Origin: Pseudomonas aeruginosa PAO1
GTDB taxonomy: Bacteria; Pseudomonadota; Gammaproteobacteria; Pseudomonadales; Pseudomonadaceae
Assembly: GCF_000006765.1 (NCBI RefSeq)
Contig: NC_002516.2
Length of the DNA stretch: 64,000 nucleotides
Reading direction: 5' to 3' (one strand)
A model generated the notes under the pieces. It was not told where the DNA came from. It searched no databases and worked only from the letters and a program-made list of their open reading frames with translations. Position 1 is the first letter of the stretch. Each line of letters begins with the position of its first letter. The translations under genes were made by a program, and so were the position numbers. This document shows, in pieces, positions 14,659-26,935 of the stretch.

Positions 14659-14874
14659 GACACCGAAGAGACGGCGAGCCGTTACGCAAGGCGTGCGCCT
14701 GCGGCGCTGCCCAACCCTCGACACGCCCCCGTAGGGCGAATAACCGCTCGCGGTTATCCGCCGTGAAACCCGTCGTAACGGCGGATAGCGCCTGCGGCGC
14801 TATTCGCCCTACCGGCAAGCCGTTACGCCCGGCGACGCTGCCCAACCCTCGACATGTCCCCGTAGGGCAATGAA

Positions 14875-14887
14875 ATGGACTCCTCCC
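14875..14887 (+). repeat. Left subterminal inverted repeat ATGGACTCCTCCC
   Basis: Exact reverse complement of 16224-16236. Confidence 0.95.
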
Positions 14888-14947
14888 TCCTACGGCGTCA
14901 AGCGCCAGACTAATGGTGCAGCCACAAGTCCCGGAGGGGGAGTCAGC

Positions 14948-15964
14948 ATGAACCTTAGTCGCATTGGTCTGGATCTGGCAAAACAAGTATTCCAGGTGCA
15001 CGGCGTTGATCGTCACGAGCATGTGGTATGTCGTCGCCAACTCAAGCGGGCACAGGTGCGGGATTTCTTTCGCCAACTGCCGCCGTGCCTGGTGGCGATG
15101 GAGGCCTGCGGCAGTGCGCACTACTGGGCGCGCGAGTTGCGGGAGCTGGGCCACACGGTACGCCTGATCGCACCGCAGTTCGTAAAACCCTACGTCAAGG
15201 GTGACAAGCACGATGCACACGACGCCGAGGCGATCTGCGAAGCCGCCAGTCGTCCGAGCATGCGCTATGTCCCGGTGAAGAGCGCAGAGCAGCAGGCCGT
15301 GCAGTCGATGCATCGGGTGCGCAGTCGTCTAGTGCGGGCCCGCACGGCGTTGTGCAATGAGGTGCGTGGCTTGCTGGGTGAGTTCGGGCTGATCGCGACT
15401 CGACGTGGGCGAGCGGCGACGATGGCCTTGCTCGAAACGGTCATGGCTACCGAGCCGGCGCCCTTGCCGGCCCCGATGGGCGAGCTGTTGCGTGAATTGA
15501 AAGATGAATTGCAGACGCTGGAGGCGCGCATCGCTCGACTGGAGCGACAGATTCAGGCTCACGTACGTGGCGATGCCCGCATCCAGCGCCTGCTGGCGGT
15601 GGAAGGCATCGGCCCGATCAGCGCCAGCGCGGTGGCGGCATCCGCCGGTGATGCACGGCAATTCCGCACGGGCCGCCAGTTTGCGGCCTGGCTGGGCCTG
15701 GTGCCACGGCAGCACTCCACGGGCGGGCAGCAGCGCTTGGGCAACATCAGCAAGCGCGGCGATACCTACTTGCGGACCTTGCTCATCCATGGCGCCCGTG
15801 CAGTCGTGCGCTGTTGCGCCAACAAGACCGATGCCCGCAGCCGCTGGCTGCAAGGTCTGCTGCAACGGCGTCCTGCCAATGTCGTCGCCGTTGCCCTGGC
15901 CAACAAGAATGCCCGGATCCTTTGGGCTTTACTCAGCCGGGAGACATGCTACCGGCCCGGTTGA
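14948..15964 (+). CDS. IS110/IS1111-family transposase (DEDD recombinase), 338 aa
   Basis: IGLDLAK, VAMEACG, KHDAHDAEAIC (DEDD); C-terminal GLVPRQHSTGG serine motif and GDTYLRTLLIHGA; GGAGGGGG RBS. Confidence 0.96.
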   Translation: MNLSRIGLDLAKQVFQVHGVDRHEHVVCRRQLKRAQVRDFFRQLPPCLVAMEACGSAHYWARELRELGHTVRLIAPQFVKPYVKGDKHDAHDAEAICEAASRPSMRYVPVKSAEQQAVQSMHRVRSRLVRARTALCNEVRGLLGEFGLIATRRGRAATMALLETVMATEPAPLPAPMGELLRELKDELQTLEARIARLERQIQAHVRGDARIQRLLAVEGIGPISASAVAASAGDARQFRTGRQFAAWLGLVPRQHSTGGQQRLGNISKRGDTYLRTLLIHGARAVVRCCANKTDARSRWLQGLLQRRPANVVAVALANKNARILWALLSRETCYRPG

Positions 15965-16223
15965 GCGTTCCTGCCACACCGTAGTTGAAACATCCACCAC
16001 GATTGCTCAGTGAATGACAATGATGACGAACCGGTCGAACCGGCCTGCATGAAACCTGGTTTATACGTGGGCTCCCTGCTGCAGTGAAGCAAAGCCGTTA
16101 GGGCGATCAGGTATGCAGGCGCGCATTTCATCAGGGCTCGGGAGTTGCAACACCACTCCATGAAGCCGGATATACGGATGCAGTCGTACACAGGTTTGAA
16201 ATCAAGACAAACACTGGCAAACC
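15965..16223 (+). ncRNA. Predicted bridge RNA/seekRNA in the IS right non-coding end (structured core about 16031-16185)
   Basis: Stems GCCTGCAT/ATGCAGGC and ACCTGG/TCAGGT enclose loops carrying TAGGGCGA (identical to the target) and TTATACG; a second loop carries CATTTCAT and ATATAC (matching the element's ends). RNA boundaries are inferred. Confidence 0.78.
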
Positions 16224-16236
16224 GGGAGGAGTCCAT
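16224..16236 (+). repeat. Right subterminal inverted repeat GGGAGGAGTCCAT
   Basis: Exact reverse complement of 14875-14887. Confidence 0.95.
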
Positions 16237-16917
16237 ATACGAATAACCGCTCGCGGTTATCCGCCGTGAAACCCGGCGTAACGGCGCATAGCGCCTGCGG
16301 CGCTATTCGCCCTACTCGGCAAGCCGTTCCGCCCGGAGGCGCTGCCCAGCCCTCGACATGTCCCCGTAGGGCGAATAACCGCTCGCGGTTATCCGCCGTG
16401 AAACCCGGCGTAACGGCGGATAGCGCCTGCGGCGCTATTCGCCCTACCGGCAAGCCGTTACGCCCGGCGACGCTGCCCAACCCTCGACATGTCCCCGTAG
16501 GGCGAATAACCGCTCGCGGTTATCCGCCGTGAAACCCGGCGTAACGGCGCATAGCGCCCGCGGCGCTATTCGCCCTACCCGACAAGCCGTTACGCCCGGC
16601 GGCGCTGCCCAGCCCTCGACACGCCCCGTAGGGCGAATAACCGCTCGCGGTTATCCGCCGTGAAACCCGGCGTAACGGCGGATAGCGCCTGCGGCGCTAT
16701 TCGCCCTACCCGACAAGCCGTTACGCCCGGCGGCGCTGCCCAGCCCTCGACACGCCCCCGTAGGGCGAATAACCGCTCGCGGTTATCCGCCGTGAAATCC
16801 GGCGTAACGGCGGATAGCGCCTGCGCGCTATCCGCCCTACCCGGCGAGCCGTTACGCCCGGAGGCGCAACCCGGCCCTCGACATGTCCCTGAACGGCCGC
16901 ACCGTCGGGCCGCGGGT

Positions 16918-26461: not shown

Positions 26462-26935
26462 CCCCGTAGGGCGAATAGCGCCCCGGCGCTATCCGCCAGC
26501 GCACCGGTACCCCGCCCGGCGGATAGCCGCGAGCGGCTATTCGCCCTACCCGAGCTCCTCGTAACCCGTAGGGCGAATAGCGCCCTGGCGCTATCCGCCA
26601 GCGCACCGGTACCCCGTCCGGCGGATAGCCGCGAGCGGCTATTCGCCCTACCCGAGCATCCCCATTGACCCGTAGGGCGAATAGCGCCCCAGCGCTATCC
26701 GCCAGCGCACCGGAACCCCAGCCGGCGGATAGCCGCGAGCGGCTATTCGCCCTACCCGAGCATCCCCATTACCCGTAGGGCGAATAGCGCCCCAGCGCTA
26801 TCCGCCAACGCACCGGTACCCCACCCGGCGGATAGCCGCGAGCGGCTATTCGCCCTACCCGAGCATCCCCATTACCCGTAGGGCGAATAGCGCCCCAGCG
26901 CTATCCGCCAGCGCACCGGTACCTCGTCCTACCCG
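26462..26935. repeat. Second GTAG-family REP array, about 103-bp period (5 forward and 4 inverted REPs)
   Basis: GTAGGGCGAATAGCGCC at 26466, 26568, 26672, 26775 and 26878, alternating with inverted GTAGGGCGAATAGCCGCTCGCGGCTATCCGCC. Confidence 0.92.

Follow-up and report, generated by a model that had tools for sequence, protein, structure and literature searches.

In this work, we examined the 3′ non-coding region (NCR) of an insertion sequence (IS) lying in a 64,000-nucleotide stretch of the Pseudomonas aeruginosa PAO1 genome (contig NC_002516.2; the whole stretch is referred to below as the window). The element is an intact copy of ISPa11, which belongs to the IS1111 group of the IS110 family, and it resides at its usual site within a repetitive extragenic palindromic (REP) sequence. 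We conclude, with a probability of roughly 0.9, that its 3′ NCR encodes a seekRNA/bridge RNA bearing both a target module and a donor module. The strong support for this conclusion is provided by the covariation observed in relatives together with the published experiments, the support from the one sequence alone being moderate. The original prediction, made from the letters of the window, had placed the element among the RNA-guided recombinases of a class that is not new, and rightly so, as the ISPa11 element, its RNA, the match to the target and the predicted match to the donor were all already published in 2024.

The RNA encoded downstream of the transposase gene

ISPa11 was described in 2006 as a REP-specific element of P. 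aeruginosa PAO1 (PMC1525189). Its transposase, TnpPa11, co-purifies with a main RNA of 96 nt and a long RNA of 172 nt, both encoded downstream of the transposase gene tnp (Siddiquee et al. 2024, PMC11187229, Fig. 3e, Supplementary Figs 5 and 6). Furthermore, the legend of Extended Data Fig. 10c in Durrant et al. (2024, PMC11208160) names ISPa11 among six elements for which the left and right target guides (LTG, RTG) and the left and right donor guides (LDG, RDG) of the bridge RNA are drawn. Both studies bear out the statement in the original prediction that ISPa11 had been among the elements studied.

To place the two RNAs in the window, we mapped the literature values for their extents, with the stop codon of tnp ending at 15964. 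The legend of Extended Data Fig. 6b in the preprint (10.1101/2024.04.26.591405) gives +39 to +210 after the stop codon for the long RNA; for the 96-nt RNA it prints ‘86-161’, which amounts to 76 nt, and the start at 66 used here was inferred from the stated length. A start at 66 would put the beginning of the 96-nt seekRNA at a CCGG hairpin (about 16030). The features of the region are as follows.

16003–16174, + strand: 172-nt long seekRNA, approximate, +39 to +210 after the stop codon according to the preprint legend
16030–16125, + strand: 96-nt short seekRNA, approximate, 66–161 after the stop codon
16022–16026 / 16128–16132, + strand: outer helix GAUGA / UCAUC, enclosing module 1 and overlapping the 5′ donor guide
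16043–16059, + strand: 5′ stem strands of loop 1
16043–16050 / 16113–16120, + strand: outer stem of loop 1, GCCTGCAT / ATGCAGGC, confirmed at exactly these coordinates
16054–16059 / 16107–16112, + strand: second stem of loop 1, ACCTGG / TCAGGT, five Watson-Crick pairs and one G.U
16060–16069, + strand: 5′ target guide, with TTATACG at 16061–16067, which complements the top strand CGAATAA of the right target half with one mismatch
16070–16096, + strand: apical hairpin of loop 1, with GGCT (16070–16073) / AGCC (16093–16096) at its base
16097–16106, + strand: 3′ target guide, with TAGGGCGA at 16099–16106, which has the same sequence as the top strand of the target spanning the insertion point and pairs with the bottom strand
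16107–16120, + strand: 3′ stem strands of loop 1, TCAGGT and ATGCAGGC
16123–16126 / 16178–16181, + strand: GCAT / ATGC, present in the sequence
16124–16131, + strand: 5′ donor guide CATTTCAT, the reverse complement of the left end ATGAAATG (14870–14877)
16135–16167, + strand: hairpin of loop 2, GGCT (16135–16138) / AGCC (16164–16167) plus the apical GGAGT (16141–16145) / ACTCC (16155–16159)
16170–16176, + strand: 3′ donor guide ATATAC(G), of which ATATAC (16170–16175) equals the right end plus the core (16235–16240)

All ten strings quoted in the original prediction are located where it had put them, and the minor stems are present as well. Its statement that the guide resembling the bottom strand comes first in both loops agrees with the published IS1111 order, where the segment complementary to the top strand is the 5′ one. 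Its drawing of loop 2 was inconsistent, the C-A-T at 16124–16126 being used both as a part of a stem (GCAT) and as a part of a guide (CATTTCAT), and the GAUGA/UCAUC helix was missed.

Conserved secondary structure in relatives

Relatives of ISPa11 were collected as 80 loci from species-representative genomes, with proteins 53–80% identical and with the ends located via the inverted repeats. For the structure test, the RNA region of 58 distinct sequences was aligned with MAFFT, and the variable hairpin was folded sequence by sequence. The results clearly showed that the structure as a whole is conserved: 88.6% of cells are paired compared to 72.9% in shuffles, and the covariation score is 0.462 vs. 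0.160 in shuffles, of which none in 500 reaches the observed value. When the partners were shifted by 1–3 columns, the score did not exceed 0.086. The G.U pairs inside the stems indicate the + strand.

Among the individual stems, the outer stem of loop 1 is paired in 96.8% of cells with compensatory changes in 7/7 pairs, and the apical GGCY/RGCC stem of the same loop in 97% with compensatory changes in 4/4 pairs. The second stem of loop 1 (ACCTGG/TCAGGT) reaches 68.7%, its conservation being limited to the outer, loop-distal pairs. In loop 2, the GGCY/RGCC stem is paired in 99.6% of cells (compensatory changes in two of its four pairs), and on top of it 58/58 relatives form an apical hairpin with 4 bp or more, their hairpin sequences being unrelated. 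Overall, covariation is strong in the loop-1 stems and in the hairpin stems of loop 2. The GCAT/ATGC closure is not: as a candidate for the conserved closure of loop 2 it was rejected, with 37% of its cells paired, and the only invariant closing pairs are GC 16121–16122 / GC 16180–16181. With the exception of GCAT/ATGC, we thus observed the conserved secondary structure with compensatory changes that is characteristic of a seekRNA/bridge RNA.

In addition, RNAalifold revealed the outer helix formed by GAUGA (16022–16026) and UCAUC (16128–16132), paired in 99.6% of cells in the 58 sequences and with two covarying pairs. Judging by the alignment, the donor region is a multiloop and not a simple internal loop, since the 5′ donor guide lies partly in this conserved helix with the upstream GAUGA. 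The helix surrounds module 1 and shares bases with the 5′ donor guide, in agreement with the remark of Durrant et al. (2024, PMC11208160) that the donor-binding nucleotides of many IS1111 RNAs are situated in a multiloop.

Guides and their DNA in relatives

For the guide test, we used the 47 loci with both flanks, where the guides taken in alignment register were compared with their own sites and with the sites of other loci. The 3′ target guide matches its own left flank plus core at 5.85/7 positions vs. 2.79 for other loci, with the core position matched in 47/47 loci; the 5′ target guide matches its own right flank at 5.36/8 positions vs. 2.85. The corresponding values are 6.23/8 vs. 5.56 for the 5′ donor guide against the left end, and 5.98/6 vs. 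5.03 for the 3′ donor guide against the right end plus core. For each of the four guides the observed value was reached in 0/5000 permutations, though relatedness inflates these counts, which should not be read as probabilities; a sturdier argument comes from how many distinct haplotypes change in a coordinated way.

As for the right end, it is copied exactly by the 3′ donor guide in 46/47 loci, which comprise seven haplotypes (ATATAC, ATATAT, ATGTAC, ATGTAT, ATGCAT, ATACAT and ATCTAT). For the left ends ATGAA, ATGGA, ATGGG, ATGGT and ATGAC, the 5′ donor guide holds an exact mirror (TTCAT, TCCAT, CCCAT, ACCAT and GTCAT, respectively), and for a sixth, ATGTG, it does so at 4/5 positions, exact mirroring of the left end being found in 37/47 loci overall. 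At the two variable positions of the 5′ donor guide, cognate matches amount to 100% and 79% compared to 74% and 38% for non-cognate ones. Family-wide, this guide is about 5 nt long, as only NNCAT vs. ATGNN covaries, and the 8-nt match of ISPa11 exceeds what is typical.

Thus, the two strands of loop 1 match opposite strands of the target to the left and right of the insertion point and covary with them, and the donor segments match, and in the sequences compared covary with, the joined ends of the element. These data support the notion that both the target and the donor guides track their DNA in this IS1111 clade. The original prediction had assigned the four segments to the REP target and to the ends of the element itself and had proposed covariation across relatives with different targets as a check; both the stems apart from GCAT/ATGC (58 relatives) and all four guides (47 loci) passed it.

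Several irregular loci were observed among the relatives. In five of them (L001, L013, L028, L029 and L049) the base at the left junction is C and the first base of the right flank is T; the C is carried by the 3′ target and 3′ donor guides, and in L001 and L028 the 5′ target guide holds the complement of T. Since the 3′ guides carry C and the 5′ target guide complements T, two guides of one loop disagree there on the core base. Three loci (L011, L037 and L038) have a 3′ NCR of 450–490 nt vs. the usual ~270 nt: in L011 extra DNA separates the tnp stop codon from the RNA module, and in L037 and L038 the module is at the usual distance from the stop codon, with the extra DNA apparently 3′ of it. 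Finally, L017, L018 and L019 represent the same element, with two copies in the metagenome chromosome OW818677.1 and one in a contig of an Ilumatobacteraceae metagenome-assembled genome; their right flanks are identical (CGTTGAAAAACGTTTTCG) and their left flanks differ.

Alternative explanations

A number of observations weigh against an RNA with two guiding modules. The first concern the single sequence. The minimum-free-energy fold recovers both stem-loops, and its stability relative to shuffles is weak (z of −0.9 for the whole tail and −1.5 for 16022–16189); the minus strand folds nearly as stably as the plus strand. As single-sequence folding is not decisive, we relied on covariation and on G.U pairs. 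A search of Rfam 15 with E up to 10 matched no family within 15965–16240, and the only matches, weak and sub-threshold, are those of REP units in the flanks to the Pseudomonas sRNA P33; this may mean only that Rfam 15 holds no model of an IS1111-type RNA. Moreover, at every REP target in the window the 5′ target guide is mismatched at one position.

Such observations might be taken to mean that the matches arose by chance in a G+C-rich tail and that the region acts as DNA, e.g., by binding a protein or by terminating transcription. About 5% of shuffles do yield one exact 8-mer in common between the 259-nt tail and a 20-bp site, the fold has a weak z-score, and nothing terminator-like was found in the region, nor any Rfam family. 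Against this, the three exact guide matches occur jointly in only 2/5000 shuffles, the stems show extensive compensatory changes and the guides covary with their sites, and the RNA of this exact sequence has been purified and sequenced (PMC11187229). The covariation and the published purification effectively refute the chance explanation.

The other objections concern the donor module. In ISEc11, an 82-nt short RNA with the target module only was sufficient and even better for transposition, 42% compared to 15% for the long form (PMC11187229). Because this RNA, lacking the second hairpin, sufficed, the donor guidance by module 2 that the sequence comparisons suggest is a putative role in IS1111 elements, and one in question. 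In addition, the donor covariation concerns only 2–3 variable positions per guide, because the ends vary little and also form the −10 box of a predicted junction promoter (see below), and the 5′ donor guide is also paired inside the RNA, with GAUGA at 16022–16026.

One way to read these facts is that only module 1 guides, the ends being recognized by the transposase via the 12-bp repeats, and that module 2 serves as a scaffold, signals processing or is a mere remnant, its resemblance to the ends having no function in recombination. Besides ISEc11, such an explanation is favored by the size of the main transposase-bound ISPa11 RNA, 96 nt, which as mapped from the preprint legend ends at about 16125, before the donor segments; by the long inverted repeats carried by IS1111 elements, IS110 elements being without them; and by the junction promoter, which constrains the donor ends regardless. 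However, the promoter constraint explains why the ends are conserved and not why a distant RNA segment changes jointly with them: seven right-end haplotypes are mirrored exactly in the 3′ strand of module 2 (46/47 loci), and six left-end haplotypes are mirrored in its 5′ strand, exactly in 37/47. Durrant et al. (2024) likewise assigned donor guides for ISPa11 (legend of Extended Data Fig. 10c). We therefore regard guidance by module 1 only as improbable.

Alternatively, CATTTCAT could be conserved for the RNA helix with GAUGA that closes the multiloop, its match to the left end being secondary. The near-complete pairing of this helix in the 58 sequences, along with its two covarying pairs, speaks for it, as does the multiloop location of the donor-binding nucleotides reported by Durrant et al. 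for many IS1111 RNAs. Furthermore, the base after CAT is C in 43/58 sequences, where it pairs with the G at RNA column 1 and not with the A of the left end; fitting the RNA helix but not the left-end DNA, this C suggests that the helix itself is selected. Yet the first N of NNCAT lies outside the helix and still matches the left end in 79% of cognate vs. 38% of non-cognate comparisons, and both roles are compatible if the helix opens upon DNA binding. A helix-only role of CATTTCAT thus seems rather unlikely, and a two-module RNA with target and donor guides remains the preferred explanation.

The ISPa11 copy and its insertion site

The transposase encoded by the element agrees at 338/338 amino acids with the ISPa11 protein sequence given by Siddiquee et al. 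(2024) in their source data, and the NCR is identical at 270/275 positions to the ISPa11 NCR printed in Supplementary Table 1 of the same paper. The five mismatches are all in the outer parts of the NCR, leaving both modules mismatch-free, and may reflect strain variation or errors in the PDF text. The nearest database protein cluster is named ‘IS110-like element ISPa11 family transposase [Pseudomonas aeruginosa]’. These identities establish the element as ISPa11, in line with its predicted assignment to the IS110/IS1111 recombinases. A search for annotated copies in a plasmid collection gave one partial 81% match, in an Aminobacter plasmid, which was not informative.

The landmarks of the element and of the interrupted target are the following.

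14862–14867, + strand: left half of the interrupted REP target, GTAGGG, which rejoins with 16240 onward
14868–16239, + strand: whole ISPa11 copy, 1372 bp
14868–14874, + strand: left extension CAATGAA, 7 nt, beginning with the core C; the 5′ donor guide reads its ATGAA portion
14875–14886, + strand: left subterminal inverted repeat ATGGACTCCTCC, the exact complement of 16225–16236
14948–15964, + strand: tnp, encoding a DEDD transposase of 338 amino acids, the only long open reading frame of the element, with PF01548 and PF02371
16215–16220, + strand: TGGCAA, the likely −35 of the predicted junction promoter, read from the sequence
16225–16236, + strand: right subterminal inverted repeat GGAGGAGTCCAT, 12 bp
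16237–16239, + strand: right extension ATA, 3 nt, outside the right inverted repeat
16240–16249, + strand: CGAATAACCG, which makes up the right half of the interrupted REP target and starts with the core C

The window contains a single copy of ISPa11, located inside one REP unit of a tandem REP array (14700–14868 and 16240–16800) with a period of about 131 bp; neither a second copy of the element nor an orphan RNA module was found within the window. The left flank ends in CCCCGTAGGG and the right flank starts with CGAATAACCG, and when rejoined they restore an intact REP 17-mer, GTAGGGCGAATAACCGC, which is found intact at five further sites of the same array (14731, 16366, 16497, 16628 and 16760). 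Four more copies with one mismatch are situated on the opposite (−) strand in a second array (26533–26858). The insertion is thus site- and orientation-specific, as is characteristic of IS110/IS1111 elements. In a 2026 review the ISPa11 target is tabulated as GTAGGGCGaATAACCGC, the lower-case a marking the position of the single guide mismatch. The element and the target share a single base, C, and a target duplication is therefore absent; for the same reason the boundary is ambiguous by 1 nt, the shared core C being either 14868 or 16240.

The element reads C AATGAA ATGGACTCCTCC ... GGAGGAGTCCAT ATA, i.e., its repeats are subterminal and are followed outward by 7 nt on the left and ~3 nt on the right, as is typical of the IS1111 group. 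The same layout of the ends, (C/T)AATGNN followed by ATGGAC..., was found in nearly all of the ~70 relatives with a located left end. The ATG of tnp follows the left end after ~80 nt of non-coding DNA, and 275 nt separate the stop codon from the right end, the long NCR downstream of tnp being another IS1111 trait.

The transposase matches the two IS110-family transposase domains of Pfam, PF01548 (2e-16) and PF02371 (9e-25). Its DEDD residues D9, E52, D89 and D92 align to D11, E60, D102 and D105 of IS621, and, together with S257, they are invariant among 17 relatives. HMMER pairs the catalytic S241 of IS621 with T258 and not with the adjacent invariant S257 (codons 257–258, 15718–15723); at position 258, Ser is present in 12/17 relatives and Thr in 5/17. 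Based on this alignment, the nucleophile appears ambiguous by one residue, S257 or T258. An N-terminal DEDD domain and a C-terminal Tnp domain with a conserved Ser are found here as in other IS110/IS1111 transposases. With the DEDD residues, S257, the inverted repeats and both RNA modules present, the copy is intact, as had been claimed.

Proposed mechanism and the predicted junction promoter

The best-supported scheme is the published one and runs as follows. The + strand transcript of the 275-nt NCR, most likely made jointly with tnp from a promoter that would arise only in the excised circle, where the ends are joined, gives rise to the seekRNA/bridge RNA bound by the DEDD transposase. In module 1 (16043–16120), a stem closes an internal loop where TTATACG pairs with the top strand of the right target half, and TAGGGCGA in the 3′ strand pairs with the bottom strand along the left target half and as far as the core C; both strands together set the insertion point GTAGGG^C. 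In module 2 (about 16121–16181), CATTTCAT would pair with the top strand of the left end, and ATATAC would pair with the bottom strand at the right end, core included, such that the module would read the joined ends ...CCATATA-C-AATGAAATGG. Since module 2 would do for the joined ends what module 1 does for the target, a single RNA could keep donor and target next to each other during the strand exchange that the transposase carries out at the shared core C. Three parts of this scheme are inferred: that module 2 base-pairs with the donor as the reaction proceeds, that the junction acts as a promoter, and, by analogy to IS621, the chemistry.

As for the promoter, a scan of the integrated ISPa11 copy for promoters and terminators gave nothing. 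The joined ends would produce a sigma-70-like TGGCAA-17 nt-TACAAT, the −10 box being formed only from 16238–16239 plus 14868–14871. In 69 relatives the junction −10 is TACAAT in 42 and TATAAT in 19 (61/69), and the −35 is TTGCAA-like, which is consistent with the junction promoters known for this family. The same bases would then serve as the donor site and as the −10 box, and this may be why the donor ends vary so little.

Upstream of module 1, ACAATGA (16017–16023) reproduces the top strand of the circle junction, i.e., the terminal A of the right end followed by the core C and by AATGA of the left end, and it overlaps GAUGA at 16022–16026. This ACAATGA/GAUGA segment could be a mimic of the left end masking the donor guide. 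One may speculate further, as a possibility to which we assign low weight, that the donor part of ISPa11-type RNAs is not IS621-like: its 5′ guide would be locked by the upstream GAUGR helix beside the copy of the junction in a natural two-state or split arrangement, where the long transcript masks the donor guide, and processing or DNA binding separates the target-reading from the donor-reading RNA. According to the mapping from the preprint legend, the abundant 96-nt transposase-bound RNA ends just before the 5′ donor guide. If the arrangement were real, a masked or split donor guide could time excision against insertion.

Comparison with known systems

For annotation, the locus is now fixed as an intact, presumably active ISPa11 with five further exact targets nearby. 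For the field, there is nothing categorically new. A modest use lies in the independent covariation test with 47–58 relatives, which shows that the target guides and the donor segments track their DNA and which bears on the open donor question because the short ISEc11 RNA sufficed without a donor module; the conserved GAUGR/YCAUC helix overlapping the donor guide is of similarly modest use. Reprogramming of guides has been shown for ISEc11 and ISEc21 (PMC11187229) and for IS621 (PMC11208160), and the original suggestion that ISPa11 might be reprogrammed by editing the loops is reasonable by analogy.

The closest known system is the ISPa11 seekRNA of Siddiquee, Pong, Hall and Ataide (Nat Commun 2024, PMC11187229), which is encoded by the very element found here: the transposase is 100% identical, the modules are identical, the REP target GTAGGGCGaATAACCGC is the same and has the same marked mismatch, and the guides come in the same order, where the complement of the top strand is 5′. 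That paper assigns the target-matching segments only and leaves the role of the long RNA open. The bridge RNA drawn for ISPa11 by Durrant et al. (2024, PMC11208160) is, according to its legend, likewise a two-module RNA at the right end with target and donor guides.

Among the other IS1111 elements, ISEc11, ISKpn4 and ISPst6 carry a conserved GCCGGATAT... motif in the 3′ NCR followed by GCA, and their right ends are CATATA or CATATG. Here, too, the guide tracks the end: in ISKpn4 the guide is GGATATGCG and the end CATATG; in ISPst6 the guide is GGATATACG and the end CATATA (PMC11187229, Supplementary Table 1). The targets of these three elements, a linear site or attC sites, differ from that of ISPa11, and their transposases are probably ~30% identical to that of ISPa11, to judge from the general between-group level in the matrix of PMC11187229.

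Finally, IS621 of the IS110 group (PDB 8WT6) shares with ISPa11 the DEDD RuvC-like and Tnp domains, two bispecific RNA modules, a short core common to donor and target, and insertion into REP sequences, although the two proteins are distant (E about 1e-8 to 1e-10, mostly in the C-terminal domain). In contrast to ISPa11, where the RNA is encoded downstream of tnp, IS621 encodes it upstream and with the reversed order of guides; its core is 2 nt (CT) vs. the single C of ISPa11, and it lacks the long subterminal inverted repeats that ISPa11 possesses.

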